A stretch of DNA of 64,000 nt, from NCBI GenBank assembly GCA_021613535.1, contig CP075494.1, positions 9,858,001 to 9,922,000 of the forward strand. The letters are read 5' to 3'. This stretch comes from Adineta vaga (lineage: Eukaryota; Animalia; Rotifera). The notes beneath the pieces are model-generated. The model did no database searches. It was not told where the DNA came from and saw nothing but the letters and a program-made list of their open reading frames with translations. The position numbers and the translations under genes were made by a program. Position 1 is the first letter of the stretch. Each line of letters begins with the position of its first letter. Shown one piece after another: positions 26,274 to 53,347 of this stretch.

Positions 26274-26377
26274 TGTTGCTCTGGCAGATCAGTGTTACCA
26301 CCAATCCACACGATTTCGTCATCGCAACATGTATTTAATCCGTTAGGATATTTACCTCTTGGTAAGTTGTAATAAGC
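26274..26377 (-). ncRNA. Spliced-leader (SL) RNA gene, pair 1 left
   Basis: GCTTATTACAACTTACCAAGAG (matches the bdelloid SL as I recall it) + GTAAAT donor + structured 82-nt intron closed by TGTTGC/GCAACA. Confidence 0.9.
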
Positions 26378-26510
26378 AACTTTTCTTCACAATGTGTGGA
26401 GCACAAACTTTTCATTGTCTCTACATATATGGTTTTGGAAGAAGCAAACGAAAAGTAAGATGTGTCGAGACAGCGTAGATGGCGTGCTCTAGAGACCACC
26501 GAAACAAATT
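26378..26510. promoter_or_regulatory. Bidirectional SL RNA promoter (133 bp), pair 1
   Basis: ATRTGTMRAGACR-N11-GTGCTC-N21 upstream of each SL start. Confidence 0.7.
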
Positions 26511-26614
26511 GCTTATTACAACTTACCAAGAGGTAAATATCCTAACGGATTAAATACATGTTGCGATGACGAAATCGTGCGGATTGGTGGTAACACTGAT
26601 CTGCCAGAGCAACA
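26511..26614 (+). ncRNA. SL RNA gene, pair 1 right
   Basis: Same leader, donor and intron. Confidence 0.9.
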
Positions 26615-27533
26615 CTTTTGCTTAATAAAAAAGAATTAAATTTACACAAATACGACTGAAAGCTTAGAAATTAGTCAGATGGTTGATGTCTATTCACAAA
26701 CGAACAATGTGTTCGAATTCGGATAATTTTTAGAACGTATAGATTATATATTGATGTTCAGATATAATTTATTTCTAATATCTTATAAAAATCCTCCACC
26801 ATTCTTTATGACGCCAGCCACTTATAGATTCCGATTCGTGATATTAATCATTGCTGTCAGGATAGTATCGATCGACTTTCTCTAGACGCACATATGTACC
26901 ATGCTCATCATAATTGATATGGTGTTTAAATGATCTTGAGAATGATTGTTCATACGAGTTTTATGAATCAATAACGGTTTCCTATTGTATTTTCAAACGC
27001 TAATACTTAGTGGAAATCTATTCTGATAACCAAATCAAATCGAGTGAAAACTGTTTTCACGTTAGATCAACAATGCTGGGTTGTTAAATTGTATCACAAA
27101 AGATTATTTTTATGTAAGAGATCGTTTCATACGTTGATGGCAGTATTTGATTTGAATTTCTAATTCTTATATTTGACATAAAACAATATTTTATTATAGA
27201 ACGAAAATAAATAATCGATGTCAACGATACAAATCTGCCTGTAGTATTTGAGGTTACCTATTTTAGACTACACGTACTTGTATCAACAACTAACTATAAG
27301 ATTTCAATTATCTCATCATCTAAGTTTCAGTAATACTTTTCGATCACCCATTCATACTTAAATATTAGAGCCGTAATAGTCGGTTAATATCCTTCATTTT
27401 CAATCGAGAGTAAAAAAAAGCGAATGAAATTAATGTAAAGTACATCAAACGATGTTTTGGCGATTTCATAATGAATAGTTAAGCGGGGATGATCGTAGCT
27501 ATATTATCTTTATAATTTTGATTAATGAAAAGC

Positions 27534-27637
27534 TGTTGCTCTGGCAGACTGGTGTTGCCACCAATCCGCACGATTTCGTCATCGCAACATGTATTTAATC
27601 CGTTAGGATATTTACCTCTTGGTAAGTTGTAATAAGC
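27534..27637 (-). ncRNA. SL RNA gene, pair 2 left
   Basis: Same leader, donor and intron; stem variant CACCAGT. Confidence 0.9.
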
Positions 27638-27770
27638 AATTTATCTACACAGTGTGTTGAGCACAAACTTTTCCTTGTCTCTACATATATGATGTGGGAA
27701 GTCGTAAAGGAAAAGTAAGATGTGTAGAGACAGCGTAGATGGCGTGCTCTAGAGACCACCGAAACAAATT

Positions 27771-27874
27771 GCTTATTACAACTTACCAAGAGGTAAATAT
27801 CCTAACGGATTAAATACATGTTGCGATGACGAAATCGTGCGGATTGGTGGTAACACTGATCTGCCAGAGCAACA
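27771..27874 (+). ncRNA. SL RNA gene, pair 2 right
   Basis: Identical to 26511-26614. Confidence 0.9.
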
Positions 27875-28131
27875 CTTTTTTTTAATAAAAATAATGATAA
27901 CGTTACAAATACAATCATCATCTCACGTTACTACTATTCCTTGTAAAACTGAGTTTACTCAGACCTCTGACATGAGCAGTATCGCGGAGTTAAAACCAAA
28001 ATCATTCTATCAAATACGAAAAAATGACATTTTAATCATATCTCTGAGATCGACTAGTTGAGTAGATAATTGTCTAAAAGCAAAAATCATTGAATTTATT
28101 TGAAATACTCAAAAGAAAAAGAATGAACATA

Positions 28132-28625
28132 TCAGGTTTTATGAAAATGAAAATGTACAAGCGGACGAAGTCCTGTTGGAACATCATGAATTATACATTG
28201 AATATGAGCAGGAAGTGGAAGTGAAGAACGTTCTCGCCATGGAACAGTACGTCGAATTAAAATTGTTGCTTGATCACGTAATGATGCAGGTGAGCATTTA
28301 GGCCATGGCTGATCTTTTGTTGTTCCGTACATTTGATCGTCACCTGGAGCAGGATAGATAGAATAAATATTAAAAAAAAGAGAGTTCATCTACAAGGAAA
28401 AAGTATCTAATAAAATAGTTATTTATATACATCGACATAATCAATTTAGAAATTGACATATGAAAATGAAGCAATTGTTTCTGATTTACGTGATCCATAT
28501 GTTGGGATCATTTTTTAAATATATTGACACTGTTTTCTTTGTACGTCCTCGTTCAGATTCATGTCACAAATTCATCCAATTGAATTGATATCAATGAGTA
28601 AATGGCTGACTGAACATATGACCTA
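28132..28625 (-). pseudogene. Degenerate gene with a SOCS-box-like C-terminus
   Basis: PASLRDQATILIRRTV...SLPLPAHIQCII; upstream exon has several stops. Confidence 0.45.
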
Positions 28626-29179
28626 GAATGGAATTGTTCAATCATTGCTCAATTTTTCTGTCAACTTTATCTCTGCGAAGTGTACGATAGAAAGCGAAAA
28701 AAAAAGAATATTTTTTTATTATTTAGTTCAGTTTGTAATGTAAGATTAATGTTACAAATAGATTTTTGTCAGCGACATCTACGTACGAGCTTTATACATT
28801 TAGCAGAATATTTTACTCATGATGAGTTCAATTGATAATAAAACGTCAGAGTAATTAACTAGGGTATATTCTGAACAGAAGTAAATTTTGTATGGATTGC
28901 GAATAAGAATGATCTCCTATAACAATCTTAAATTTCAATACAAATAATTGAAAATGAATATAACATGTTTGGTGTGAATATAGGTTTGAAATAGATCTCA
29001 TTTCAATATTTTCTAACAGGTATGTTGTTATTTTTGATAAGATGCGAAAAATAAATATGTCACTGGAGATTTCACAATATAGATGGATCGACGAGATGGT
29101 TATCGTGATATAAATAATCCGATATGACATTATTTTTGTCTCATTTGATTTTTGAAATCTATCACGTCTGATACGAATT

Positions 29180-29639
29180 ATGATTGGACTTCGATTTGCT
29201 GTATTTTCTTGTTTTATTCTATTCGGTAAATTCATTTTCAATCCAAATTCACTCGGGAAAAAGAATATTTCATATTTATTGTAGTCTTCATTCCGTTGGG
29301 TAACAGTTTGAAATGCTATTCATGTACGGTTTGCAACGATCCTTTCAATGAGAGTGATGTGAAGATGGAAGAGAAACCTGATGGTGAAGGATATTATTGC
29401 ACAGTACGTTCATTTTTATATCTCTTTAATATTTAATAATTATCTGCTGTAAAATCTAGAAAATATCTGTGGGTTTCGCTATAAATCGAGGCATATCTAA
29501 AACATGCGATCCTGTAAATGTTTTTGGTAAAGGTCAATGGTGTTGTCAAAAAGACTTTTGCAATCATAGTAGCAAAACGTTACCAACCAATCTTCTACTA
29601 ATAGCTTTGATCATGGTTGCGTCAATTAAATTTTTTTAA
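29180..29639 (+). CDS. Ly6/uPAR three-finger protein, probably GPI-anchored, 3 exons
   Basis: Signal peptide, LKCYSCTVCNDP...WCCQKDFCN, hydrophobic C-terminal tail; not in the ORF track because of introns. Confidence 0.85.
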
Positions 29640-29807
29640 AACTGTCTTCATTTAAGCAAAAAAATATTGTTTCTTTTTCTTCGTAATAAAATTATATTAA
29701 TGGTGAATAAGCACAACATTATTATAGACATGAAATATTTAAATGCTACAGGTTTCAAACTACTTGATATGATTATAATGATTTGTTTTGTCAATAATTC
29801 TCTTCGG

Positions 29808-32800
29808 CTATTTCCAAAACTGAACAAGTTCATTCGTAGACCAATAGATACTTAAATTTTTGTTTATTTTCTTCAATTCCATTAAATTTCGTCCTTCTTT
29901 GTTATCCATTAAATTATTTTCCAGATTGAGAGTAGTAAGTGTCTGAAACGCATAAGATTCAATAGATTAAACAAAAGAGCATAGTATACTATTTTACTGA
30001 ATTATATTGCAAAGCTTCGCGTAATAATTTGACTCCTTTATCGCCAATACTATTACTTGCAAGATTAATTTTTGTCAATGTCTATATGAAATAATAGGCT
30101 ACATAAACAGATAAAAATTTAAACATAGTCAGTCTAACCGTATTATTACGTAATGCATCGCATAGATATTGTGTACCTTTGTCACCAATATGATTGCAAC
30201 AAAGATTGAGTGTTGTTAATACCTGTATTACAAACGAATCAAAATAACAAATGATAGATTGTTTATTCACTTTGTTTTGTTGTAATGCACCATTGAGATA
30301 TTGCATACCTTTTTCATTAATATCATTATATCCGAGATCAAGCACACGAAGTGTCTATCGAATAAATAACATAGATAGTTTTCTAACAAGAAAATATTCT
30401 TCTTTTCATACTTTATTTTTCAATAGAGCATCTCGTAAATATTGTGCTCCTTCATATTGAATTCGATTGAAAGCAAGACTCAATGTCGTGAGTGACTATA
30501 TGGCATAAAATAAATCATTTTCGATATAGTTCTTATATCTTACTGAATTATATTGTAAGGCAGTACTTAAATGTTCTACTCCATCATTTCCAATTTCATT
30601 TGAAGTTAATATGAGTGTAAGAAGTGTCTATAAATATATAGGAGAACTTTACATATGAAAAAAGCCTTTTTTTATGCGTTACTTTATTATATCGTAGACC
30701 ATCACTTAAATATTTTACTCCTTCGTCGGGCATTTTCGAACAGTCCAAATTCGATGCCGATAGATTCTATATTATATAAAAGATTATTGAAGAATACAAA
30801 TGCATTCTTTTTACTCGAGTATTTCGTAGAGTATCATATCCACCACTACCAATTTTATTATTTTCTAGATTAAGAACAGTAAGAGTCTAGAAGAAAATGA
30901 TTAGATCATATTGTAGTTTAAGAGTAGGAAATAATCTTTAATTCATACAGAATTACGCCGTAATGCTTCACTCAAACATTGAGCTCCAAGTTCGCCAATT
31001 TGATTTGAAGAAAGATCAAGTGTAGTAAGTATCTGTAATAGTATTCCTCATATATTTCTCTCGAAAGAAATAGTTCTTACTGTATTGTATCGTAAAGCTT
31101 CACCTAAATACAATGCTCCTGTTTCTCTGATTTCATTCGAAGAGAGACTAAGTATCGCAAGTGCCTATACCATACAATAACAACTAATACCAATCAAAAA
31201 CGATAAAAAAATATTTATTACCTTATTTTGTCTTAAGGCAATACTGAGATATTTTGCTCCTTCGTTTCTAATTTTATTAAAATCCAGATATAGTGTTATC
31301 AGAGCCTAAATACATAAAATCAAAAAGTTCCTAACATAAGTATAATTAATTTACCGTATTCAGACGTAATGCATCACTGAAATATTCGATTCCTTCGCTA
31401 CCAATTTGATTATGTTCAAGATTTAATATTTTCAATGTCTACAATAACTATAGTCAGTTAATATGCAAGAAAAGAAAACAAATGAAAAGGTTTGTTTACT
31501 GAGTTATGTTTTAATGCATTACTTAAATGTTGCATTCCTTCGTCTTTGATCTGATTTTGTTTTAAATTACAGGAAGTAAGTGTCTAAATGGTAGAGAAAG
31601 ATTGTTAAGAAAAATATCATTGAAAAAAACAAACAAGAATCTTACGGTATTTTTTAGCAAAGCATTAGTCAGATGAACTATTCCTTCGAAACCAATATGA
31701 TTATGTTCGAGAGAGAGCGAAGTCAATGTCTAAAGCGAAAGATATGAATCGTAAGACGGATTTTTCTCCTACTTTGTTTTTTTGTAATGCTTCACTTATA
31801 TATTGTGCTCCTTGACATCCGATGTTATTATATGTTAAACTAAGAGATGTTAGTGTCTATATAAAAGAATCAATTAAACAGAAAAGCAACAATGATATTT
31901 TATTGTTCTCACTGTGTTAAGTTGTAAGGCATAACTTAAACATTGTACACTCTTATCATCAATTAGATTCTGAGAAAGATCGAGTACTTTTAATGTCTAA
32001 ATTGAATTTAAAACACGTCACAAGAAAGTTGTGTTTATAAAGCTAATATTATTTATACCGTATTATATTGTAAGGCATGACCCAATTGCTCTATGCCTTG
32101 AACATCAATTTGATTATTTTTTAGGATGAGCGTAGTAAGAACCTAAAGTATAATTAACAAAGTTAAATGATGAATGAATATTATATGTATTTTTTCACCT
32201 TATTTTGTATTAATGCATTGCTTAGATATCGAGCTCCATGATTTCCAGCTCGATTATTTTCCAAATTGAGTGAGAGAAGTTTCTATTATCATGCTTAATT
32301 ATGAATATTCAATTATCCGATTAAAGACTGTCTTACTGTATTATTTTGTGTCAAAAAATAAGCGACGATTTCCATATCTTGATCAATAAGCTCCATTGAA
32401 TTCAAAGATAAATGTGATTTATTTTGTTTTGCTTGAAAGATTTTTTCTAATCTTGGATTACGAAATTGCAATGGAGATGGTGTTCTAGTTGTTGGTTCGG
32501 AAAATGTAAGCGTTGGTTGCTCTAGAAATGATGTTAAATTTCGCAATGAATTCACCGGTCTCAATTTCATTCCCGGTGATGCGGACGCTGATTCGATAGA
32601 TAAATAGTTTCGTACTAAAAATATGAATTAATCGAATTCGAGTGCATTCTCTCTATTGAAGATTTTATTTTCCTACCAGGTACGAATAAACTAGTTGATC
32701 TAGGAATGAATGCCGTTGACATAGGTATAGGTTGTAATAATGGATAAACCGGTTGTATTTCTTTGAGAGAAATTATATGTAAATCACCTTGATGTAAATA

Positions 32801-33436
32801 ATCAATTACTTGAAATGATGTACCAGCCATAAGAAGTAATTCATCTGTTGATGGAAAATATGAATGACCACGTATATCTTTACCTGTATGACATTCAATT
32901 GTAAATAATGTTCTTGAATTTGATGGATTTAAATATTGTTCCGATTGTAAAGTATTTAATAAAGTTGTACATAATGAAAATCCCCACCATACAATTATTT
33001 TACCTATGGGATAGTTATAACTTAAATCTATGTTGATACAACGATAAACAGTTGTCGATATATTTGGTAATCGAAATAATCCATTTAGAAGAAGTCTTAA
33101 ATAAAGATACCATGGCTTTATATACTCTCGATTCGATGAACGTAAAATAGAATTTAATACAGAATAAAGACATTGATCTTTTGGTTCCCATCCCATTGAA
33201 TAAAGCATAATGGCAGCAGCTTCATCTGTTGTGAGATCATCTGCAGGATGTTCACATCTTTGTTTGGCGCTCTGAGCATAATTTTTAATCCTTGGTACAA
33301 ATTCTACCAATTTCTCAATCGCTACTTCCAACGTTTCTAGTGGCATATGTTCATAGCCATTAATTGGTAGAAGAAATTCTTGTGGTTCTTCTGCAATGTC
33401 AGTGATACGTAATATGCGATTTGAGATAACATCCAT
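29808..33436 (-). CDS. Mono-ADP-ribosyltransferase (ART) domain fused to RI/NLRC3-type leucine-rich repeats (mostly 84-nt exons)
   Basis: LTTDEAAAIMLYS, VYRC, WWGFSLCT, YFPSTDELLL; repeated exons TLTxLxLxxNxIGxxGxxYLxxALxxN. Confidence 0.88.
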
Positions 33437-34220
33437 TTGCTCGTTTATCTAATATTAAGATGTGAACTTCTAAAAAAAACTTTTATCTGAGATTTTTCTA
33501 TTCATGTATACAGGTTTATAACGATTGATTACATAAAAAACTTCTCAAAATAAGCTTTCACGAATGACTACTATTACGAAGAAAAATGGAGTTTGAATGC
33601 AGCAACATTGTGCGGATGACTGTAGTTGAAAGCATTAAGATGTCTAAATTGTATTCATTAAGCTTGAATATAAATTTTAACAAAATCTTTTATTCTCTTT
33701 TTTTCCCTTCTACTTCACATCAATTCAAAGATTATATTCAGTTTTTTTTAGACATTCATTTATTTAAAACTAAAACACCGTAAATTCATGCAAATTGATG
33801 ATGTATGCAATGAAAATGCTGACAGATAAAAAAAGAACATTATAATTTAATTAGAAATTTATTGAGCTGTAGTGTATACATTAATTATGTTGACGATGTT
33901 ATTCAGTGACATCTACGTAGTCGAGCCATGTTTTTTTTTCAAAATACTTACCTCCGAAATATCAATGGTTAATTAATTCGCTCGTCCTATTCTTTACATT
34001 TCTTCGTCTTGTTCTTTCAATAAAATATTGTATTGTATGTGTCTACATCGTCTTTTATTGCAAGGTGAACGAACATTTGTTGTTTATTTTTTCTTTCCTC
34101 TTTTTCTCTCGAAGAAATTCGATCAACTATCTTCTTCATCTTAGATTTTTATATTACGTTATTCTTTCTTTTCGAGTTTCTTTTCTTTTTATGATGAGAT
34201 AAAACCAAATTTTGTCCTAT

Positions 34221-37200
34221 ATGGCAGGTATTATCATTAAAAAAACATAACATCAATGTAAATATTAAAAGAATCTTTTGTCTAGGTGATTGGAGAATCA
34301 GTACCGAAGATCGAACAAAGTACGATTCGTACTTTCAACAGTGTAATCCAATCCAAGGTTATGTAACAGGTATGAGTTGAAAGAGGATAAATTGATAAGA
34401 TTAATAATTAATTCTTCAAGGTGATCAAGCCCGAAAGTTTTTCGTTCAATCCGGTTTACCCGGAGAGATTCTTCGTAAAATATGGTAAATAATATATATA
34501 CATATATGCCGATCGTTTTGAAAAGAATTAATCGATTATTTTCGTATTTATCAGGGATCTTTCGGATATAACCACGGATGGTCGTTTAGATAAACGAGAA
34601 TTTGCTATTGCTTGTCATTTAATTGCTTCACAAGTAGAGATATAAAACAAATGAATTCACAGTTTTAAATAAAATTTGATTGGTCTATTGAAGGTTCAAA
34701 AGAAAGCACAACTTCCAGCTACACTTCCTCCTACTCTCCTCTCTGATGCAATAACGATAACAACAAATGGTGTTTTACCATCTATGCCTATGTTTCCATC
34801 ATCCATTACACGTAAGTAGTTTCGTCTTATCGACTATTTTCTCATCAGTTATGAAAACAATTTTAAAATAAACTAATGGATATTAAAGGACCACCAATGC
34901 CTATTTGGAGTGGTAAGAATACTATGTAGTGTGTCTTGTCTTTGTTAACCTGAATAACGCTTTTATCTCTCTTGTATAAACTTCATTTATCAATAAATAT
35001 TCTTCTTTTATTTAGCTCCCGGTCAACCATTAGTTGCAAAGTAAATCCAACGCAATTATGATTTAAAATTCTTAATGAATATATTTTCCTTCGTTTCTTA
35101 GTCAATTATTAAAAGCAGCAATTGTTCCTCCTTTTCCATTAAATGCAGCTAGTCGATCAAAATATCTACAACAATTTCATTCATTAGTTGATGTTACAAA
35201 AACTAATGGATTTATGACGGGTGTACAAGCAAAAAATATCCTTCAACAAACAGGTTTATCTCAAACTTATCTTCATCAGATATGGTAAATATAGCATATG
35301 TTGAAATTCATATGGAATAAATCGAATTTGATTTTAGGAATTTAGCTGATATCGATAAAGACGGTCGTTTAACTCCCGATGAATTTGTTATAGCAATGCA
35401 TTGTTGTGATGTTATACGTGCTGGTCAAACTCTACCTGTACGTGTCCCAGATGAATGGTTACAAGGAAGTACAATACTACGTGAACGAGCAGGTTCATTA
35501 GCAAAATCCAATGTTAGTCAAGCATTTGCAAGTATTAATCAAGATTTGAAAGATACATTTTCATTTGCAACATCAACGGAAAATCTATCCAATGAAACTG
35601 CCGAAGCTCTCGAACGAAAGAATAGTCTTGTAACTTATGAAGAAAAACGACAGAAAAATTATGAGGTTCGTCGTTTTCATTTGTATTTCTACTAGTTAAC
35701 TTGTACAATTTTGTATATAGGATGGATATAGAGAATTAGAACGACGTCGACAATTATTACGTGAACAAGAAGAACGTGAGCAAAAAGCACGTGAAGAACG
35801 CGGTAAGATATACTTGTTATTTTTAATAATGAAACGAAAACTTAATGTTTAGATCGTCAACGTGACTTAGATTTACAAAAGCAAAAAGATGAACAAGAAC
35901 GTAAAAAACAAATGGAATTCGAACGACAATTAGAAGGGCAACGTCGATTGGAACAACAAAGAGAAGAAGAACGAAGGAAATTATTCGAACAACGAGAAGT
36001 AATTATCAGAACGACGAAAATTCATTTCAATTTAAATTGATTTCAGGCAGCAAGAAAAGAAATGGAACGTAAAAGTCGTTTGGAATGGGAACGTCAACGT
36101 TTACAAGAACTATCTGTGCAAAAATCTCGTCTCCTTGAACAAATTAATGATCTAAAATCACGCGAAAAAGCACTTGAATTAGAATTACAAAGTATGGATG
36201 ATACAATGCAAACACGTCAAACAAAAATTCATCAAATTAATACAAATATTCAAACAATAGATCAATCGATTGATGAAATTCAAAAACGTACTCTGCAAGA
36301 AAAAAATCTTTTAGAAAATTTCGAGCAACAGAAGAAAGATGCAATGATGAAGTTAAATCGTATCCAAGCAGAAAAAGGATCTATAAGTTCATCTTTACAA
36401 CATCTTAATCAATCAAAAGAATTCAGTATGAAGAGAAAAACACATACTTAAGAATCGAATTGTAATGCATTCATTTTGTTCTGTTAAGATCCTGGAAATC
36501 GCGAGTCGGATCAAATGAAATTTGCTCAATTAAAACTTGATAATATGAAACACGAAAATAGTCGAATTGATGAACAAATTACAACAATGAATTATCAATG
36601 TAAACAATATCAAAATCAAATGGAGGTTTGTTTAATTGAGAATATATGTATAAAAAAACATTCATTTTACATCCTATTTATCGTAGCAACTTCGTCTTCA
36701 ATTAAATCAACTTGAACAAAATGCTCGAAAAGCAAAATCACCATCAAAGTAAGAACTATTATTGGATCTTTCATACTGATTACTATCTTTATTCTTCTTT
36801 TTCCTCCTAAAGTAAAACTACACCAACAGCGGCTTATAGTAAGAAATCTTTTTCTGTGTCTTCTTTGCTCTAACCTATCTTGCTTTGTTATTTGTCAGCT
36901 AATTATGATCAATTCCATGCTTCCAATGATTTCAATTCTTTATCTGCCTCATTTCCCATTGCTTCCCCATCAGCTCTTGATGTCGATCCATTTCAAACAG
37001 TGGATCCATTTGCTTCTCAATCTGATCTAGGTTCACCTAGTACAATTGTAACAAATAATGATTGGTTTCAATCACCTACAAATGGATCTTCACCAAATGA
37101 TCCATTTCTTTCAAAAACAGAATTTTCATCACAAACACAAAAATCTCTACCAAAAACAAACGGAAAACAACCATCCGCTGTTGATCCATGGGGTGGATCA

Positions 37201-40200: not shown

Positions 40201-42724
40201 CATTATTATTTTTTTTTCTGTATAGCCGCATCAACTTTTCCTCTTTTTTTTGTATCACTCACTCATAATATGAAAAAAAACGAAATATAATTATCTATAA
40301 AGCTATACTTCACTTTAAAAGCAAACTACTCAATTCTCTTTTGAAGAAGCACCAATAAAACAATTGTAATAATGGCTGTATGAAGACGATAAATTGCGCA
40401 TATAATATGGGTAGCTTTTTTTGAAAGTATTGACGACATTTTTCTATGCATGTCGACTAGCATGGCTAATTAGTTTGAGAATTTGAAATAGTCTAAATAT
40501 CACTTGATTGTTTTCTTTTCCAGTTCCAACAGCACAAGCACTGCCAAGTGATCCCTCACGAGTATCTGCGATACAAGAATTAATTGAAACTGAACAACGC
40601 TATGTCGATGATTTATTAACTGTTGCTAATAATTTTATTAAACCATTGAATAATATTCGAGTTTTAAGTGATTATGAAATCGATCAACTATTTATTAATT
40701 GGTTTCATCTAATTGCATTGAATAGTAATCTACTCAAAGCTTTACAAGAACAAGTGAATTATAAAGAAGACATATCATCAACAGAAAATGGAGTTGTAAT
40801 GAGAACACCACGATCAGCATCTTTATCAAATATTCAATTAGTTGCTCAGGTTTGTAACTTGACACAATTTGACACAATTTGAAATGGATTCAAATATTTA
40901 TTGTTATTGTTTTAGTTGCATTCAAAAAATTCAATTGCTGATCGTCATCGTTCACATACACCTGAAGTTTTACATTCGCCAACAGTACTTCGAATAAAAC
41001 ATCATAGCGTTCTTCATCATCGTTCACCATCAAGTCATAATCTAACAGTTCACACACCTATTGAACATATGAATAATTCTCTATCTCCATCATCACCAGG
41101 ATTTCCATCATCTGCCACAATGACAATTAATGAATCAACAAAAATCGGTGACATTCTTTGTTCACATTTACCAAGTATGATTAATGAGTATTTTCAATAT
41201 TGTCATCGTCGTTTTCAAGCAAATAAATCATTTCAAATAAAATGTGATTCCAATGAACAATTCCGTTCGTATTTACAAACATTTCAAGAGAAAACCGGTG
41301 GTTTATCATTGAATGGTTTTCTAACAAAACCCATTCAACGTGTTACACGTTATCCATTATTAATTGAGAAAATTCTTAAACATACTTCACAAAATCATCC
41401 GGATTATTTATCCATTAAACAAGCATTTGATTGTGCACGTCAATTAAATGAACGAATAAATACACAAATAAGTGAACAAGAAAGTAGTTCACGTTTAGAT
41501 TGGTTACAACATCATTTAACATTTGGTAGTGATGAAAATTGTTCCGATGGATATTTATTTGATGAATTAGTAAAATTTAATTCATTAAATCGTTATCATA
41601 TTCAACGACAATTACTTTTACATGGTTTAGTCATAAAAGTATAGAGAGAGAAAAACTATCATTCTATTTGATTGAATGAATTTTGTTTTAGGTATCAAGT
41701 GGAAAAGAATTATTAGGATTTTTATTCAATGATTTTTTGTTACTTGCAACAATGAAATCATCGAATAATTGGCATACACAAATATTTGAACGGAAAACAA
41801 ATTTCCAATTAAAACTTTATCGCATGGTTTGAACAAAAAACATTTTCTAGAAGTTGATTTTATCTTATTTTTCATAGCCTTTATTTCTAACTGATATCAT
41901 CATTGCAAGTGATTCACTTCATGATCAATTATCATTTTCAATTACAACAAAAATTTATGAAAAACCATTACAATTAAAAACCCAGCAAACAAATGTTCGG
42001 TATGTAAATAGAATGAAATTGATGAAAAGCAATGATTTAATTTAGAACTTTATGGGTTAAATCAATTAATAATGCAGTAGAAGAATGTCAAGCAGCAGAA
42101 AAATCTATTTTAGCTGATAAAGCAATGTTTGCAGTAACAGGTAAAAAGAAATGTTTGATTTAAATCAAATTTTATTTCTTTTTCTTTTCTCTTTAGAAAA
42201 CAAACGTGATTCGAAAATAGCTGTTGCTCGTCTTTTACTTGTGGTACAAGAAGCACAGGATCTATCACCAGCACCAACAACAGTTGATCGACATCGTTCG
42301 TATATGAAATTTGTTGTTTAATAGTTTAACATTTCTTTTTCTTAGGTTCTGTTGATCCATATTGTGAAATAACAATTGGTGAATTAACATTAAAAACTCC
42401 ATTTATTAAACGAACACTTAAACCAAAATGGAATGCACCTATGCAATTTCTCTTGTATAATTTAGTTGAAGATACGATACATATTAATATATTTGACAAT
42501 GAATTTTTTTCTCCTAATGGTTTGTTTTTCCATGTTCTTGTATGAAAATCTTCTTTTTTTTTCATTTAGAAAACCTTGGTTCAACATCGATTAATCTTAT
42601 TGATATTCTTCCTTGTTCATTAGATAAATTTTTAACACAACCATCATTACCATTTACACAACAAGTTTATTTGAATAATGGGGCTTCATTAGTAATCAAA
42701 TGTACCGTTCAACTTTTAACATGA
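34221..42724 (+). CDS. ITSN: Intersectin, long form (EH-EH, coiled coil, 5 SH3, DH, PH, C2)
   Basis: IWDLSDITTDGRLDKREF and IWNLADIDKDGRLTPDEF; KELERRRQ-type coiled coil; five SH3 domains; IQELIETEQRYVDDL...FLTKPIQRVTRYPLL; C2 DPYCEI...PKWN. Confidence 0.93.
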
Positions 42725-43120: not shown

Positions 43121-43145
43121 GTGTGTGTGTGTGTGTGTGTGTGTG
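43121..43145. repeat. (GT)n microsatellite
   Basis: About 12 GT units. Confidence 0.9.
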
Positions 43146-43930: not shown

Positions 43931-44064
43931 TAGTTGACAGGGTAAAAAAGAGAAGGAAATTAATGTGACGTCCATCAGATGATATTTTGGGGATTTCATA
44001 ATGAATAATTAAGCGGGAATGGTCGTAGCTATAAAATCTTTATTATTTTGTTTCAAAGAAAAGT

Positions 44065-44140
44065 TGTTGCTCTGGCAGAGCAGTGTTACCACCGATCCGC
44101 ACGATTTCGTCATCGCAACATGTATTTAATCCGTTAGGAT
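44065..44140 (-). ncRNA. 3' part of the SL RNA gene interrupted by the LINE (pair 3 left)
   Basis: SL intron sequence from ATCCTAACGGATT to GCAACA directly follows the LINE poly(A). Confidence 0.88.
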
Positions 44141-44243
44141 TTTTTTTTTTTTTTTTTCCTCTCTTGTTTTATTTATTTGCATCCATGACAAAAAACCACT
44201 AAATTCAACCTGAAAAAACAAGTATGTTAGTGCAATGACTAGG

Positions 44244-47200
44244 CTAACCAACATCAAAAGGTAACCGTTTGATGGTTGTTAAGAAAAGTCGGGTTGCCAT
44301 GGATGGATCTAATTCAAAATTTCGACTACATTGGTGTCTGGCGATATTTCGATATTTCCATATGGAAAATAAATAGTTGCCGATCATAAAAACGATATTC
44401 TTCCGTATTTGACGAATGGGCGATAACTGATTGATTTCTTTGAGGTATATAATATCGATTGTTGTTTTACTAATTTTGTTACCACAGATTGATTCTAATC
44501 TGTCGTTGAGACAGTCAAAGAGCTTGTTAAAAGCGGAACATTTCGTGAAAAGATGAGATGGAGTTTCGACTTCGTTGCATAAAAGACATTTTCTTGTATT
44601 TTCATTGTGGCCGGTACGTGATCGAGTATGGATTCCATAATTGGCTAAGATCATCCAAAAGTCCAGTGTGTGACTGGGCAAGCTTTCTCTCAGCAATCGG
44701 AAAAAATTGATATTTTTTAAAAGTGGAACTTTACGTACAGAAACAGGATGACGAAAGTAAAATCGATTAACGATTTGCCAGTAAAAGGATGGTTGATTTT
44801 GTTGTATGTTTAGACTTCCACCTGCTTTCAGCCACTTTGCAGTATTTGATGCAACTTCATGGAAGAAAGAATCGCCTTTCTCGATGTGAGGTATCAGATT
44901 TGACCAAAGACGTGGGGCATATTGTCGTAATTGAACACCTGTTTCTATTAAAGCATAAAATTTCCAAGGAGCTAAATGCAATGGATTGATCAGTTGAGAA
45001 CCACATTTAATTCGAAGTGCTTCGATCATTGCTTGAAGGTGCGGTAAACTATAACCCCCGTCATGTTTATGTCCGATAATTGTTCTTAAATGAATTCGAG
45101 GACCCAAAGAAGACCAGAAGAACTTCACAAACATATTTTGCAGCTTTGCCACCACTTTCTTCGGAATAACTGAGAGTGAAAACCAATATATCAATTGACT
45201 CAAAATAAAAACTTTCAACACCGTTACTCGTTCCTTTAAGAAAGGTTAATTGTGGACCAATATCCAATCTGTTGTTTGATACTATTTAATTTCTTTTCCA
45301 ATTCGAGTGGTGGCAGTTGTCCTTTTGTATCCATTGGAATACCCAGAAAGATACACCATTCGCAATTAATTTTGGCTTCGAAATATGGTGGAGTCAGCCA
45401 ATCTGATATCCATAGTATTTCGGTTTTGGAGCTGTTGACTTTTGCTCCTGATGCTTGACTATATAATTCAAACATGTCCATTGTTGATCTTTCTTCGTCG
45501 CGATTTCGTACAAGTGTGTTGATGTCATCGGCGTAAGCTATGGTTTTGATTTTCACTTGTTCCGTATTGAGTATATTGTCATTAATTGGAAAAATAATTT
45601 GACGAATAGCTCTAAACTGACTTCCAGGTAGAAATGCACCAGGAATTGATTGATTTAAACGTATACGATTTAGGAGTGGTTCGAGACAAATAATAAATAA
45701 TAAGCCTGATAGGCTGCAACCCTGCCTGACGCCCGAACTAAAAGCAATCGACGTAGAGATGTAATTGTTTAATTTGATTCTAAAGGATCCGTTGCCATAA
45801 AGAAGTTTTATCCAATTGATGATATTGGAAGTAAAACCAAAAGCATTTAATACTCCTACTAAATATCGATGGTTAATCCTATCAAATGCTTTCTCCTGAT
45901 CCCATAAAACTATCCCAATCGGATCACGAATTCGTCTTTGGTATTCAATGATTGATCTGATTAAAATGACATTGTCCTGTATTGACCGGCCAGGAACTGA
46001 ACATGTTTGATCAGGATGAATGATGTTGGCAATCACCTTTCGTAGACGTGTACTAAGAACCTTTGATAATATCTTGTAATCGATGTTCATCAAGGAGATA
46101 GGTCGAAAATCTTTCATCGACCCGTCGGATTTGTTCTTTTTCTTGAGGAGAGTTAACAATGCTTGAAGAAATTTAGGATGGAATTGACCTTTTGTTTTAG
46201 CAGTGTTAATCATTTGAATGTAATGGCTGCCAATTATAGGGAAAATCAATCGCCACACCTCGGCAGTAATGCCATCATCACCTGGTGATCTTTGATCAGG
46301 AATAGCACGAAGTGCATTAAAGCATTCCGATACTGATATTTCTCGATCTAATAATTCACGATCTTCTTCACTTAATTTTGGTAAATCAGCGAACAATTCA
46401 CTCCATGATGACATATTGATTGTTTTTTCTTTATATAATTCATGATAAAAAAGTGTGGCAACTTCGAGCATGTCGTCAATTTCCTCTACACGTCCTTTCA
46501 GTGGATGGTTGAGGAAATGGATAACAGATTGATTTGCCCGCGTACTTGATAGACGTGAAAGAGCAATTTCTCCAAGTTCTTGAGTTGTTTTATCACCGTG
46601 TCCATGATTATTTGCCATTACTTTTTTGACCAAAGTGTCGTGGATGGTATCACGAATTTTATCCATCTCCTTTAAATCGTTAGCTGAAGCATTCGTTGCA
46701 AGTGTGCGATAACGTTCTTGAAGACATTTAATACCATTTCGTGATTCAGCAACCATTTGTTTTTGTTCATCTTGTAAGAGCAAAATTAAACTAGTTTTTA
46801 AATCTGACCACCAGGCAAGATCTTCAAAATTCGAAGACTTTTTGAGTACTTCCCATATTTTTTGGAAACGAGGTAGAAAACTTGGTCTTTTAATCACTTC
46901 GCCATTACATATCCATCTATGGTATTCTGTTGTTGTTGTTGGAGGTGATGATAAATGAAGTGACATTCCATCATGATCTGAAATGCCAACGGGTGTATAA
47001 GCAATATGCAAGATGTTTTTGCGTATAACCTTCGTTCCAAAGAAAAAGTCGATGCGACTGTGTATGTTTCTGGATTCATTGTGGTAAGAGTACACGATTG
47101 AACGAGGGTGTTTTGAGCGATATAATTCGATTAAAGATAATGGTTGTAGAAATTCACTATTGAGAGTTGCATAAGAACGTTGATCATTTCGACCTTCTTG

Positions 47201-47656
47201 GCGAAGACGATCTTTTGTTGGATCAGCAATACAATTAAAATCACCTCCAATCACCATCCAAAGAGATGTCGGAATATATAAATGAAGATCTTTGAAAAAA
47301 TCCCACCTTTCATTTACTTGTGTTGGTGCATAAACACTAGCTACTGTAATAGGACAATTGTTGATTATAATTTTGGCGAAGGCGATCCGACCACTATAAT
47401 CTACGCCAGAATCAATAATGAGTAATTTGTGTTTTATCATGACCATTACACCACCAGCTGACCATGTTCCGAGACTACAGAAAATAGCATAATCAGTGAA
47501 TGATTGTTTGAAGAGATCTAATTGTTGTTTCGACGTAATATGTAATTCTTGTAGAAGAACAATATCATGCGGGTTAACTTTGAGCCATTCTCGAAATAAT
47601 GATTGTTTATTAACTGATACAATGCCACGGATGTTAAATGAGAAAATTGTAATCAT
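44244..47656 (-). CDS. LINE ORF2 (APE endonuclease, RT, C-terminal CCHC) with one apparent 1-bp frameshift at ~45237
   Basis: SFNIRG, LLQE, GGDFN, SRIDF, SDH; FRPISLMNIDYKI, DQEKAFD, GVRQG, YADD; CLLC...HLFTKC; one extra T restores NLS-LKERVTVLK. Confidence 0.9.
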
Positions 47657-47849
47657 GTTTGATGTAATTGTTTAATCGGTAAGGAATTTATAATTTTTTT
47701 TTTTATTTTGAATGATTTTTAAACATTTTTTTTTGGACTTTTAATTAGTTCATTAATTTTTTTTTTTTTTTTAAATATTATATATACATGTGTATATATA
47801 TTTATTCTTTTTAATGTTTTTGTGTGATTTTTACTTGTGAGATGGAGAG

Positions 47850-49046
47850 TTATTGGTCATTAACTTCTCCCTCCTCTTGTTCGTCCATTACCGACGTTGA
47901 AGAATCGTATGTGTGAGCTTTCTTTGGGTCCACTTCTAGATCCGAATCGATGCTTCTATCTGCACATGTTCGTTTAAAATCACTTGTTGAGTTCTTGTAT
48001 GCTTGATACATTATACGTTCTTGTAATGACGTGGCTGTTGTAGCAACCACAGCTTTTTCATTTTGATCCTCTAATAATGTGGACTGTTGTGGATCAAGTA
48101 TTACATTGTCTTCATTTTCTGGTACAGCTTTTGTATTTGTCAAAGTTGTTGTTGTTTGTTGAACTTCTTCGACGGAAATAACATGATTATTTGTATCTTC
48201 TTTTCCAGGTTGAATATTAAGATTTTGCTGAAGAGAGCAATCTTTGGGTTTATGACCAGATTGTTGACAACGAGGGCAAACTTTCTTTTTCCGCTTTTGT
48301 GAAGCCGTTGTTGGTTTAAATACCTGTCCAACTGGAGTAGATTCAACACCCGTATCACCTTGAATACTTGGTGAGTTTGTAGAAAAAATGTTCACTGGTG
48401 TTTCACTAACTGCAGCTGCATATGATTTATTCTGTTGGCATAATGGATCATCATGTCCAAGTGTAAAGCATTTATGACATTTTAAAACTTTACATTCCGC
48501 TTTAATATGACCAGCTTGTTTGCATCTATAACAAACTTTTTGACGACCTTCAAGATTGACCGAGAACGTGTAACCATTATAACGAATACTAATAGGTACT
48601 TTTTCTTCGTCTTGGCGTGTAAAAAAGCGAATACGTATGCGACGTACGAATGTTTTGATTGTTTCAAAAGGTTGTGGCAGTTTTTCTACATCAACATTAA
48701 GAACTAAACCTCCCCATTTTGAAGCAATTGATCGAATATCATCGTCTGAAATAGCTGGTGGAACATTAAGTAATCTAATAATTTTGACATGTTTGTATGG
48801 TTCGCTAATCATAAATGTTTGATCACCAACTTTAAATTCATTATTTTTAAGAATAATTTCTCTTGCATTGGTTGTTTTAAAGATAACGTACCATTCAGAG
48901 AAATTTCCGAGATTTCCAAACGAGTCAATATCTGACACTGGAATGATCTGACCGAGAGCATTAATCATTCCTGTGCGATCAATTCGATCGCTACCTTTAA
49001 TCAATGTAAGCAAAACTGCTTCCCGTATCAACTGGTGAAACGACAT
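47850..49046 (-). CDS. LINE ORF1 (gag-like, CCHC zinc knuckles)
   Basis: First ATG at 49046; CYRCKQAGHIKAEC, CHKCFTLGHDDPLC, CPRCQQSGHKPKDC. Confidence 0.9.
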   Translation of the reverse strand: MSFHQLIREAVLLTLIKGSDRIDRTGMINALGQIIPVSDIDSFGNLGNFSEWYVIFKTTNAREIILKNNEFKVGDQTFMISEPYKHVKIIRLLNVPPAISDDDIRSIASKWGGLVLNVDVEKLPQPFETIKTFVRRIRIRFFTRQDEEKVPISIRYNGYTFSVNLEGRQKVCYRCKQAGHIKAECKVLKCHKCFTLGHDDPLCQQNKSYAAAVSETPVNIFSTNSPSIQGDTGVESTPVGQVFKPTTASQKRKKKVCPRCQQSGHKPKDCSLQQNLNIQPGKEDTNNHVISVEEVQQTTTTLTNTKAVPENEDNVILDPQQSTLLEDQNEKAVVATTATSLQERIMYQAYKNSTSDFKRTCADRSIDSDLEVDPKKAHTYDSSTSVMDEQEEGEVNDQ

Positions 49047-49221
49047 TATAAAATTTCGTAACCAAAGATAAGCAAAGGTTAATGGAAATATATAATAGAA
49101 GGATAAATTGAAATAGAGCGCAGAATGAGCTGACAAGAATCACGCTAAAATCGCTCGTTTCACAGATATCTTCTTTGTTTATTTAAATTTGGAAAAATTT
49201 AGTGTTTGTTTTTCAATTCAA

Positions 49222-49262
49222 AATCCGTTAGAATATTTACCTCTTGGTAAGTTTTAATAAGC
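49222..49262 (-). ncRNA. 5' part of the interrupted SL gene (leader exon + donor + TSD), pair 3 left
   Basis: GCTTATTAAAACTTACCAAGAG|GTAAATATTCTAACGGATT followed by the LINE 5' end. Confidence 0.88.
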
Positions 49263-49395
49263 AATTTGTTTCGATGGCCTCTAGAGTACGCCATCTACGC
49301 TGTCTCTACACTTTGCACTTTTCCTTTACGACTTCCCACATCATATATGTAGAGACAAGGAAAAGTTTGTGCTCCACACATTGTGAAGAAAAATT

Positions 49396-49499
49396 GCTTA
49401 TTACAACTTACCAAGAGGTAAATATCCTAACGGATAAAATACACGTTGCGATGACGAAATCGTGCGGATCGGTGGCAACACTGATCTGCCAGAGCAACA
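49396..49499 (+). ncRNA. SL RNA gene, pair 3 right
   Basis: Leader, donor and intron. Confidence 0.88.
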
Positions 49500-49690
49500 A
49501 CTTTTCTTTCAATAAATGAAATAAAAGATAAAATTCTTAAGAATGTGAGTTTTGTTGTGGCAACTATTCCGATTTGAAAGCAAGCTTTTCACATCAATCT
49601 GCAACACTGTTATAGAACGTTTGATGTTACTGATTATTTTCGTATCTCATTTTGTACTACACAGTCAGTTATCTTTCTATATTAATGGAT

Positions 49691-49776
49691 AAAAGTTGTT
49701 GCTCTAATAGATCAATGCAACAAACGCGCATTTATGTAGACTGAAGACAATATCAATCTGCTAGAGCAATATTTTC
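49691..49776. pseudogene. Collapsed relic of an SL gene pair
   Basis: AAAAGTTGTTGCTCTAATAGATCAATG and CAATATCAATCTGCTAGAGCAATATTTTC resemble the two outer ends of an SL pair. Confidence 0.55.
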
Positions 49777-50229
49777 CTCAATTTCTTGTCACATCAGAAA
49801 GGAATTTTAACGACCGTTAAATAACAATTCCAAATTATTGTTCAAAAATTGCAAATGGTTAAACTTCGATTATATACTCAATATCAACAATGCCAATGAA
49901 ATGCATCGGTATTCTACACACTTTTAATGAAACTATTTATATCACACATCCATTCTGTTTCTTTTGCTGAAACCGAAAGTTATAGATTCATTAAATTTTG
50001 TTCTTCTCTGTGATCAAATTAGTCAAATCGAATCGTTGTTGCTCATTCTCTTTTTAACTTGATTGTGTTTCAATTAGGTTATCACATTTATATTATTATA
50101 TTTGAGTTAGTGCATAATTAATTATCTTCTTTTTTCTCTATACTTATCCGTGAGTATTTTCTCTGGTATGTAATAAATTCATTATGCACGGTGAGTAAAT
50201 ATAAAGTTTTCTTTGGTTAATAAAAAAGT

Positions 50230-50333
50230 TGTTGCTCTGGCAGATCAGTGTTGCCACCGATCCGCACGATTTCGTCATCGCAACATGTATTTAATCCGTT
50301 AGGATATTTACCTCTTGGTAAGTTGTAATAAGC
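50230..50333 (-). ncRNA. SL RNA gene, pair 4 left
   Basis: Leader, donor and intron. Confidence 0.9.
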
Positions 50334-50466
50334 AATTTTTTTCGATGGTCTCTAGAGCACGATATCAACCTCGTCTTTACACATCGTACTTTTCCTTCCG
50401 TTCTCCCGAAACCATATGTGTAAAGACAGCAAGAGAATCGTGCTCTAGAGACCATCGAAACAAATT

Positions 50467-50570
50467 GCTTATTACAACTTACCAAGAGGTAAATATCCTA
50501 ACGGATAAAATACATGTTGCGATGACGAAATCGTGCGGATCGGTGGCAACACCAGTCTGCCAGAGCAACA
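50467..50570 (+). ncRNA. SL RNA gene, pair 4 right
   Basis: Leader, donor and intron. Confidence 0.9.
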
Positions 50571-51522
50571 ACTTTTCTAATAATCAAATACAAAAAGATA
50601 ATCTAAGTACAATCATTGTATCGATACTACCAGTTGTGATAGGAGAAAATATGTAATGGATGAATGCACTTTATTTTCTTGATCAAATAACATCTCTCAT
50701 TATAATATTCTACCACCATGCAACTATTCTCTTAGTTTTAATCTAAATAGATGTCAATTTTTTAACTTTCTCTTAACAAAGCAACATTGCTTGGCTGATA
50801 TATCATTATCACATGATAAATGCTTCGAAGTAGACAAGAACAATACGGGGATCGAGTGAGGGAGTCGTACGTTTTCTTCAAAATACATCGTATTTAATCT
50901 TGATTTAGTAAATTCATAACGATACATGCCTTAGACACCCACAAGAATTACAATAAAGTCATAGCTTTCAAATGTATGATCTCAATCTCACAGATTCATT
51001 ATCGGCACTAGTAATGATTAACCAATTTTCAATGTATAGACAGTTTATTGTTCTATAGATGTTGCTTTATCCACCTTTCAACCACTCAACAGTATATGAA
51101 GCCACTTCACACAAGAACGTGTTCACATACTATATTTGAGGAATTAAACTAGACCGAAATCACTCAATAAAACGATTCCGAACACAGACCAGTATTCGAT
51201 CTGTTGTTTGATGTTAATATTTTATACTCTCATTCTGTTTGTTACATTGCTAACTGCGTCTATAAATATCTCAAGAAAAGTGTACCAGTCGCGACATACT
51301 TACGCTTCGGGGAGTGACATCAAAGACCACTTCAAACTCGAAAAAACCGTTCATGAACCAATGCATGTTCTGCGATGAAATGCATTTTCCCATACTCTCA
51401 ACCGAATTCATGTCGACATTTTTTTTAGATTTACATTCATTCAGCTTTATTGAGAACTCGTAACAAATGTTAAGATGCTTTTACAGATTGGATTATTTTT
51501 TTTCCTTGTTTAATTATAAAAG

Positions 51523-51626
51523 TGTTGCTCTGGCAGATCAGTGTTGCCACCGATCCACACGATTTCGTCATCGCAACATGTATTTAATCCGTTAGGATAT
51601 TTACCTCTTGGTAAGTTGTAATAAGC
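51523..51626 (-). ncRNA. SL RNA gene, pair 5 left
   Basis: Leader, donor and intron. Confidence 0.9.
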
Positions 51627-51759
51627 AATTTGTTTCGATGGTCTCTAGAGCACGCCATCTACGCTGTCTTGACACATCTTACTTTTCCTTTACGACTTCC
51701 CATATCATATATGTAGAGACAAGGAAAAGTTTGTGCTCAACACACTGTGTAGATAAATT

Positions 51760-51863
51760 GCTTATTACAACTTACCAAGAGGTAAATATCCTAACGGATT
51801 AAATACATGTTGCGATGACGAAATCGTGCGGATCGGTGGCAACACCAGTCTGCCAGAGCAACA
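51760..51863 (+). ncRNA. SL RNA gene, pair 5 right
   Basis: Leader, donor and intron. Confidence 0.9.
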
Positions 51864-52648
51864 GCTTTTCTTTCAATCAAAATTATAAAGATAATATCGC
51901 TACGATCATCCCCGCTTAACTATTCATTATGAAATCGCCAAAACATGGTTTGATGTACTTTACATTAATTTCATTCGCTTTTTTTTACTCTCGATTGAAA
52001 ATGAAGGATATTAACCGACTATTACGGCTCTAATATTTAAGTATGAATGGGTGATCGAAAAGTATTACTGAAACTTAGATGATGAGATAATTGAAATCTT
52101 ATAGTTAGTTGTTGATACAAGTACGTGTAGTCTAAAATAGGTAACCTCAAATACTACAGGCAGATTTGTATCGTTGACATCGATTATTTATTTTCGTTCT
52201 ATAATAAAATATTGTTTTATGTCAAATATAAGAATTAGAAATTCAAATCAAATACTGTCATCAATGTATGAAACGATCTCTTACATAAAATAATCTTTTG
52301 TGATACAATTTAACAACTCAGCATTTTTAATCTAACGTGAAAACAGTTTTCACTCGATTTGATTTGGTTATCAGAATAGATTTCCACTAAGTATTAGCGT
52401 TTGAAAATCCAATAGGAAACCGTAATTGATTCATAAAACTCGTATGAACAATCATTCTCAAGATCATTTAAACAACATATCAATTATGATGAGCATGGTA
52501 CATATGTGCGTCTAGAGAAAGTCGATCGATAGTATCCTGACAGCAATGATTAATATCACGAATCGGAATCTATAAGTGGCTGGCGTCATAAAGAATGGTG
52601 GAGGATTTTTATAAGATATTAGAAATAAATTATATCTGAACATCAATA

Positions 52649-52871
52649 CAGTGCTGTTCAAAATTATAAGAACAAAGCTTTTTTTTATGTATTAACAAAT
52701 TTTTATCTCCCTTTTCTCTGCTTAAATTGATCTCTCAAATAGTATATATGTATTCGAGTACTCGAATACATATATACTATTTGAGAGATCAATTTAAGCA
52801 GAGAAAAGGGAGATAAAAATTTGTTAATACATAAAAAAAAAGCTTTGTTCTTATAATTTTGAACAGCACTG
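52649..52871. mobile_element. Tc1/mariner-type MITE forming a near-perfect spacerless palindrome
   Basis: CAGTGCTG...CAGCACTG termini, TA TSD; empty site in the mirror arm at ~26749. Confidence 0.88.
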
Positions 52872-53006
52872 TATATAATCTATACGTTCTAAAAATTATC
52901 CGAATTCGAACACATTGTTCGTTTGTGAATAGACATCAACCATCTGACTAATTTCTAAGCTTTCACTCGTATGTGTAAATTTAATTCTTTTATTATTAAG
53001 CAAAAG

Positions 53007-53110
53007 TGTTGCTCTGGCAGATCAGTGTTGCCACCAATCCGCACGATTTCGTCATCGCAACATGTATTTAATCCGTTAGGATATTTACCTCTTGGTAAGT
53101 TGTAATAAGC
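53007..53110 (-). ncRNA. SL RNA gene, pair 6 left
   Basis: Leader, donor and intron. Confidence 0.9.
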
Positions 53111-53243
53111 AATTTGTTTCGATGGTCTCTAGAGCACGCCATCTACGCTGTCTCGACACATCTTACTTTTCGTTTGCTTCTTCCAAAACCATATATGTAG
53201 AGACAATGAAAAGTTTGTGCTCCACACATTGTGAAGAAAAGTT

Positions 53244-53347
53244 GCTTATTACAACTTACCAAGAGGTAAATATCCTAACGGATTAAATACATGTTGCAAT
53301 GACGAAATCGTGTGGATTGGTGGTAACACTGATCTGCCAGAGCAACA
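53244..53347 (+). ncRNA. SL RNA gene, pair 6 right
   Basis: Leader, donor and intron. Confidence 0.9.

Follow-up and report, generated by a model that had tools for sequence, protein, structure and literature searches.

Spliced leader RNA genes of the bdelloid rotifer Adineta vaga are mostly arranged in divergent pairs with a nearly fixed spacing

Introduction

Trans-splicing in bdelloid rotifers, and the spliced leader (SL) RNA that serves it, have been known since 2005 (Pouchkina-Stantcheva and Tunnacliffe, as summarised in PMC3795323, PMC1925144 and PMC2606063). The bdelloid SL RNAs are about 100 nt long, and their leader is found on more than half of transcripts (PMC1925144). Elsewhere, SL genes form same-strand tandem arrays, often near 5S genes, and they are multicopy, clustered and subject to concerted evolution (PMC3795323, PMC12582326); according to a 2025 paper, SL gene arrangements in other groups have not yet been analysed at scale. 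Here we describe a stretch of 64,000 bp from the 100.8-Mb, six-contig assembly of Adineta vaga (GCA_021613535.1; contig C5, CP075494.1, positions 9858001-9922000; hereafter the window), in which SL RNA genes lie head to head. These genes resemble the nematode (SL1/5S), flatworm and trypanosome arrays in being multicopy, clustered and in concerted evolution, but their unit is a divergent pair of fixed spacing, and the linked gene is U2. No description of a bdelloid SL gene layout was found in the literature, subscription papers and supplements lying outside the search. The RNA and the process are known, which limits the surprise, and the conserved back-to-back gene layout is apparently undescribed. 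What follows is the first genome-wide picture of rotifer SL gene organisation that we could find, and it breaks with the tandem arrangement usual elsewhere.

Back-to-back small-RNA genes occur in other lineages. Dictyostelium has divergent pairs of small nuclear RNA (snRNA) genes, and in trypanosomes U2 and U6 genes are accompanied by a divergent tRNA gene, whose internal boxes act as promoter. Neither case involves SL-SL pairs, and, unlike the trypanosome U2/U6-tRNA genes, the bdelloid SL genes each have upstream elements of their own. Insect snRNA genes transcribed by RNA polymerase II (Pol II) use two short elements at a fixed upstream distance, PSEA and PSEB (PSE, proximal sequence element; PMC1761439). 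The bdelloid arms follow a similar two-part upstream plan, with a distal element common to U2, but the sequences are unrelated to those of insects, and the accessible part of that source does not describe insect genes as obligate divergent pairs.

Results and Discussion

Six SL gene pairs in the window

Twelve starts of a 22-nt leader were located in the window, and they fall into six minus/plus pairs whose starts are exactly 133 bp apart in all six cases (Table 1), as stated in the original prediction, which was made from the letters of the window alone. The twelve SL genes announced there have to be reduced by one. Eleven units are full-length genes of 104 nt that reach 115-120 bits with a covariance model built from these and related sequences, while the minus-strand unit of pair 3 is broken off after about nt 41. 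It has been split by a long interspersed nuclear element (LINE) of 5.08 kb, and its nt 30-104 are found at the other end of the element, behind poly(A). Each unit has the GT donor behind the leader, the terminal TGTTGC/GCAACA helix and the GTAA/GCAA hairpin loops that had been noticed. Stem variants are present too, but they do not always preserve pairing, as a C-A mismatch occurs in the hairpin of two intact copies (starting at 50467 and 51760). The description of six palindromes of about 340 bp is likewise right in part: five cassettes measure 341 bp and their SL arms are identical at 100-103 of 104 positions, but the palindromy is limited to the RNA part, the halves of the 133-bp spacer agreeing at only 33-43 of 66 positions.

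The gaps between successive pairs are 919, 21347, 730, 952 and 1143 bp. Four of them conform to the predicted 0.7-1.1 kb, and the fifth separates two sub-clusters lying 21.3 kb apart. Not all of the sequence between pairs is unrelated, as had been supposed, since two segments of the window form an inverted duplication with 98-99% identity. Pairs 1-2 and pairs 6-5 are carried on its two arms, and the window therefore holds four independent cassettes rather than six. Three further SL pairs are found directly beyond the window end. Genome-wide, the leader pattern gave 59 matches against none for the reversed control, which excludes chance. Rfam (at gathering score) and ARAGORN returned no matches in the window, and linkage to 5S was rejected, as Rfam finds no 5S in the window or at the scanned loci. 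Between pairs 3 and 4, positions 49667-49768 match the model weakly (21.6 bits, E 0.012) and possibly represent a decayed SL fragment.

Leader use and RNA structure

The 22-mer is identical to the 23-nt rotifer leader listed in Table 1 of PMC3795323 from its second to its last base (nt 2-23), and given the same leader, a length within the published 100-105 nt or so and the same GT donor, the window RNA is the bdelloid SL RNA. It differs from the published form in that the genomic leader has 22 nt. A T is present at -1 in 95-100% of genomic SL units, and the extra 5' G of the published leader is therefore probably cap-derived.

A scan of environmental contigs with the leader pattern gave 101 loci, and prokaryotic and viral collections gave no matches. 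Three mRNA-like environmental contigs start with the 22-mer, which is thus present at mRNA 5' ends: the leader stands at base 1 in L095, which contains a Rab2 reading frame, and in L082, and after three G in L115 (Rab1). In the A. vaga genome, Rab1 is found on C2 and C5, and Rab2 on C3 and C6; six chromosomes make up the published assembly, 1/4, 2/5 and 3/6 being homoeologues (PMC8494291). These Rab1 and Rab2 orthologues have a pyrimidine tract and an AG exactly at the position of the leader junction in the environmental contigs, followed by similar sequence. A contig from an RNA run begins at this acceptor in the A. vaga Rab1 gene, with zero coverage across the 330 bp upstream. Related animals thus carry the leader on their mRNAs, and the A. 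vaga data are consistent with the same use.

The RNA fold was assessed in an alignment of 120 distinct SL units, a set picked by leader similarity. It comprises stem-loop I around the donor, stem-loop II, the terminal helix and a long 3' hairpin. Pairing is possible in 95.2% of cells, compared to 90.0% in shuffled alignments and 22-51% in slid controls, and double-change cells number 236 against 66 in shuffles, a count that kinship among the sequences inflates. None of 500 shuffles reached the observed value for pairing or for double changes. Covariation is concentrated in the 3' hairpin, with up to 47 double changes per base pair, and at several base pairs A-U is exchanged for G-C, or the reverse, in 22-47 sequences. 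RNAalifold finds the 3' hairpin and the terminal helix unaided; a small hairpin at nt 57-68, predicted by single-sequence folding, was rejected since the consensus fold lacks it. In helix I, 96.5% of cells are paired, with zero double changes, G22-G23-T24, which includes the GT donor, is invariant in all 120 units, and a GNRA loop is present in 90 of them. The best-conserved region is an internal loop, RAUGACG opposite CCAGA, which adjoins the terminal helix (alignment columns 66-75 and 110-117). In this loop G71, A72 and A115 are found in 120/120 units and G114 in 119/120. Such a composition would fit a kink-turn-like motif, whose invariance yields no covariation.

The leader match, the mRNA-like contigs with acceptors in the orthologous genes and the covariation in the RNA body all agree with the original interpretation of the units as SL RNA genes, and we consider it virtually certain that they are bdelloid SL RNA genes.

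Gene layout in the genome and in related rotifers

By combining the leader pattern, BLAST and the covariance model, we found at least 85 SL loci in the genome, with each split gene counted once. Divergent SL-SL pairs account for 78 of them (39 pairs), and the start-to-start gap is 130-135 bp in 31 of the 39 pairs, 19 of which have exactly 133 bp. Another three loci face a U2 gene at a distance of 122-131 bp. Four loci are solitary; they score 61-67 bits, compared to mostly 100-120 bits, and are degenerate, truncated or placed in tandem behind U2. The environmental contigs contain 113 distinct SL units with enough room to test for a partner, and 103 of these were paired: 98 face another SL gene (89 found by pattern and 9 more by model) and five face U2. 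The pairs are mostly 131-137 bp apart, 134 bp being the commonest distance. Several environmental samples repeat the same animals, the contigs have no species assignment and a single ancestral event is possible, so these counts show conservation and not independent origins. Divergent pairing is no local oddity but prevails in this genome as well as in related rotifers; the original prediction that it is unusual holds by comparison with the tandem arrays elsewhere.

In a few pairs on C5 (10.91-10.93 Mb) and C6 (4.52-4.53 Mb), at loci L010-L012 and L016-L017, the leader of one arm is two bases longer and a U2 gene follows in tandem. In some of these, the spacer is cut to 110-115 bp and the promoter elements of one arm are lost.

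Putative promoters and polarity of the cassette

Each arm has a TGTGTARAGAC-like box at about -51 to -40, at the same offset in both arms, a GATGTCGTG-like box at about -33 to -22, and AAGTT or AAATT before +1. Of 76 metagenome arms, 60 have the distal box, against none of the control windows, and a similar box lies upstream of all 14 U2 genes checked. This position-fixed PSE-like element, common to U2 and SL genes, is predicted to be part of an snRNA-type promoter. Between the distal boxes of a pair, the centre measures 28-33 bp; it is purine-rich on one strand and otherwise unconserved. With two such promoters held within 131-137 bp, the cassette is a compact natural test of snRNA-type promoter interaction.

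Eleven dispersed pairs were compared over 60 promoter positions. Within a pair, the left and the right promoter differ at 18-25 positions, whereas the median differences between same-side promoters of different pairs are 6.5-13.5. Left and right promoters are thus separate lineages, indicating that the cassette is polar and is copied as a unit. Three of the eleven pairs have almost the same RNA body in both arms (1-3 differences), while their right arm departs from every other right arm at 5-10 positions. These near-identical arms suggest occasional gene conversion from arm to arm.

We propose that each SL gene, including the copies in the window, would be transcribed outward, most likely by Pol II and presumably with SNAPc, from its own compact snRNA-type promoter, made of the PSE-like element at about -51 to -40 and the second element at about -33 to -22. 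Splicing from the G|GT donor of the 104-nt RNA to an unpaired AG acceptor would then place the leader on pre-mRNAs. What is inherited would be a polar two-gene cassette with back-to-back promoters and some 30 bp between the distal elements, its start-to-start distance held at 131-137 bp across bdelloids and its partner gene sometimes being U2. Such a cassette would spread by duplication of DNA (segmental, inverted or dispersed) and not by transposition of its own, and its arms would occasionally be homogenised by gene conversion. We give this explanation, bdelloid SL genes in polar two-promoter cassettes, a probability of about 0.9, and we are just as confident in the predicted presence of two independent snRNA-type promoters per cassette and in its spread by DNA duplication.

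Several observations weigh against this explanation. A canonical Sm site (RAU3-6GR), the absence of which had been remarked correctly, occurs in 1 of the 120 aligned units, and the published rotifer Sm variant AAYUYUGA (PMC2606063) in 0 of 57 units from A. vaga itself; it is present in 17 of 99 units from other animals, inside stem-loop II. On RNA contigs of A. vaga (Rab1) the leader is not displayed, only two unread letters preceding the acceptor, and the SL stretch of these loci was found in no RNA run searched, the material being contigs of long-RNA libraries. The leader-bearing mRNA-like contigs come from other animals, as metagenome contigs without species assignment. Finally, the start-to-start gap is 110-115 bp in four of the SL-SL pairs and 242-436 bp in four more. 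Other accepted SL RNAs are likewise without an Sm site (PMC6053224, PMC2606063), and its absence therefore does not overturn membership in the bdelloid family. Among about 150 sequences, the rotifer Sm site of the literature is not conserved, which reopens the question of how the SL particle is assembled.

Possible selection on the spacing and other explanations

Why should the spacing be so constant? We lean towards selection on it, because the length is constant over a diverged centre, the SL-U2 gap is similar and the solitary copies are decayed. The functional reason might be a shared region of open chromatin or the cooperative loading of two promoter complexes. The pairing could also be a historical accident, in which one ancient inverted duplication has been block-copied ever since with no selection on its geometry. 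A single event may indeed lie behind all pairs, the promoters are separate for each arm, the central 30 bp are unconserved, and some units are solitary, oddly spaced or in tandem (SL then U2). Yet in 38 distinct metagenome spacers the length stays at 132-137 bp although the centres have diverged beyond recognition, SL-U2 pairs keep 122-137 bp, and all four solitary loci are low-scoring; an accident of this kind is a serious possibility that we do not favour. A stronger version of the selective view joins two ideas: SL genes and some U2 genes would be obligate two-promoter units, loaded cooperatively about three helical turns apart, with solitary copies decaying, and the SL RNA would assemble on the kink-turn through a Snu13/L7Ae-type protein instead of an Sm ring. 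This combination is speculative and, in our estimate, rather unlikely. We find it still harder to believe that both genes depend on a single bidirectional element at the centre, on the model of vertebrate bidirectional promoters. The fixed spacing and the purine-rich, strand-biased centre of most pairs would suit such an element, but both arms have their own motifs at the same offset, the centre holds little positional information across species, and U2 genes with no divergent partner have the same distal motif. A single shared central promoter element was rejected as a candidate, since the centre is not conserved.

The remaining alternatives question the nature of the palindromes. The original prediction likened them to miniature inverted-repeat transposable elements (MITEs), and the 341-bp units could be MITEs or fold-back transposons with SL-carrying or SL-derived arms. 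Like the Tc1/mariner-derived MITEs, the cassettes are short, non-coding and multicopy, with inverted arms, here of 104 bp, and about a dozen single pairs are dispersed over three chromosomes with partly common flanks. What they lack are the marks of transposition. No consistent target-site duplication was found at the cassette ends, only AT-rich chance words, and the dispersed copies have no sharp common boundaries, flank homology ending raggedly after <100 to >1000 bp. The arms end in the 3' helix of the RNA and a T-run, covariation at the RNA level is seen inside each arm, and U2 can stand in for one arm at similar spacing. A true MITE that displays the hallmarks missing from the SL cassettes lies 140 bp from pair 6, outside the SL unit (Table 1); it has relatives on C1, C2, C3 and C5 and shows a filled/empty contrast between the duplication arms. 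We therefore regard a transposon origin as very improbable. Nor can the palindromes reasonably be attributed to the assembly. Palindromes in the first A. vaga assembly did prove to be artefacts (PMC8494291), and the 3.7-kb inverted duplication is known from the assembly alone. However, the arms and the spacer halves differ in sequence, the same layout is present in dozens of independent metagenome contigs, and four DNA runs (one study, possibly of the source strain) hold 52-66% of the words of 26200-27950, so that we practically discount this explanation.

Returning to duplication as the way of spread, BLAST revealed decayed U2 remnants in the flanks of two dispersed pairs, on the downstream side of the left arm (L002:2613-2677 and L014:2267-2301), on which basis the dispersed pairs probably descend from a U2-SL-SL block. 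A Helitron or a carrier with terminal inverted repeats was rejected as improbable for want of common ends. For genome annotation, SL cassettes can be masked as MITEs by repeat annotators, and no Rfam model detects them.

A retrotransposon in pair 3

The LINE in pair 3 is a Tx1/L1-type element, and Tx1 is a known LINE family of A. vaga (PMC7943196). Its second open reading frame (ORF2) is a single frame of 1142 codons in two other copies and is broken into two frames near 45221-45236 in the window copy. Besides the latter, full copies are found at C5:10915977-10921051 and C6:1428237-1433292, and each of the three interrupts an SL gene at an identical position, about 18 nt past the donor. The genome also has one short 3' fragment that is not in an SL gene. 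The SL sequences at the 5' and 3' junctions differ from each other by one, several and three changes in the three copies, and are thus not clean target-site duplications. It looks as if the LINE brings its own SL 5' end. The SLACS, CRE and CZAR LINEs of trypanosomes target SL genes, and the insertion of all three full copies at a fixed SL-gene site is reminiscent of these elements and of NeSL in nematodes. In contrast to the NeSL and CRE clades, which use a restriction-like endonuclease (PMC4640811), the pair 3 element has an APE endonuclease and a zinc knuckle in ORF1.

In the environmental contigs L049, L059 and L102, which derive from other animals, SL and U2 genes are interspersed with reverse transcriptases 54-62% identical to that of the window LINE. 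On C3 (L022/L144, C3:6910780 and 6912691), an SL gene stops behind its leader, where about 1.9 kb of coding-like sequence intervenes before an SL 3' part.

Duplications and neighbouring genes

The inverted duplication that holds pairs 1-2 and 5-6 is accompanied by others. A second inverted duplication, also of 98-99% identity, links 22260-23648 with 63403-64786, extending past the window end, and a direct duplication links 15426-16259 with 19267-20100. Judged by their sequence, these duplications mark a recently rearranged region.

Table 1. SL gene pairs and associated features in the window, with promoter assignments predicted (LTR, long terminal repeat).
Feature	Position	Strand	Leader start	Evidence or remarks
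Left arm of 98-99% inverted segmental duplication, with pairs 1-2 and Ctr copper-transporter exon	24142..27879			
SL RNA gene, pair 1 left arm, intact, 104 nt	26274..26377	-	26377	leader and covariance model, 116.5 bits
133-bp spacer, pair 1, two mirror-placed putative snRNA-type promoters (~-51..-40 and ~-33..-22 of each gene)	26378..26510			
SL RNA gene, pair 1 right arm, intact	26511..26614	+	26511	leader and covariance model
SL RNA gene, pair 2, intact	27534..27637	-	27637	leader and covariance model
133-bp spacer, pair 2	27638..27770			
SL RNA gene, pair 2, intact	27771..27874	+	27771	leader and covariance model
3' remainder (nt 30-104) of LINE-split SL gene	44065..44139	-		
Tx1/L1-type non-LTR retrotransposon, 5.08 kb, in SL gene	44140..49221	-		ORF1 zinc knuckle; ORF2 APE endonuclease and reverse transcriptase; poly(A) 44140-44157
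5' part (leader, donor, to ~nt 41) of split SL gene, pair 3	49222..49262	-	49262	
133-bp spacer, pair 3	49263..49395			
SL RNA gene, pair 3, intact	49396..49499	+	49396	leader and covariance model
SL RNA gene, pair 4, intact	50230..50333	-	50333	leader and covariance model
133-bp spacer, pair 4	50334..50466			
SL RNA gene, pair 4, intact	50467..50570	+	50467	leader and covariance model
Right arm of the inverted segmental duplication, with pairs 5-6	51518..55479			
SL RNA gene, pair 5, intact, inverted duplicate of pair 2	51523..51626	-	51626	leader and covariance model
133-bp spacer, pair 5	51627..51759			
SL RNA gene, pair 5, intact	51760..51863	+	51760	leader and covariance model
True MITE, 223 bp	52649..52871			near-perfect hairpin, CAGTG ends, TA duplication, empty site near 26749 in duplicate arm
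SL RNA gene, pair 6, intact, inverted duplicate of pair 1	53007..53110	-	53110	leader and covariance model
133-bp spacer, pair 6	53111..53243			
SL RNA gene, pair 6, intact	53244..53347	+	53244	leader and covariance model

Among the neighbouring genes, the Ctr copper transporter at 54050-54526 (+) has a mirror copy at 25095-25571 (-) and has been duplicated along with the SL pairs. A minus-strand gene at 28855-33436 combines many short repeated exons resembling leucine-rich repeats with an arginine ADP-ribosyltransferase (ART) domain at 32615-33436 (Pfam E 2e-10), and a 749-codon open frame at 19940-22189 contains a 2OG-Fe(II) oxygenase domain. Further genes encode a GDSL lipase (12281-12934), a RhoGEF protein (40916-41644) and a ZZ/TAZ zinc-finger protein (571-1284).

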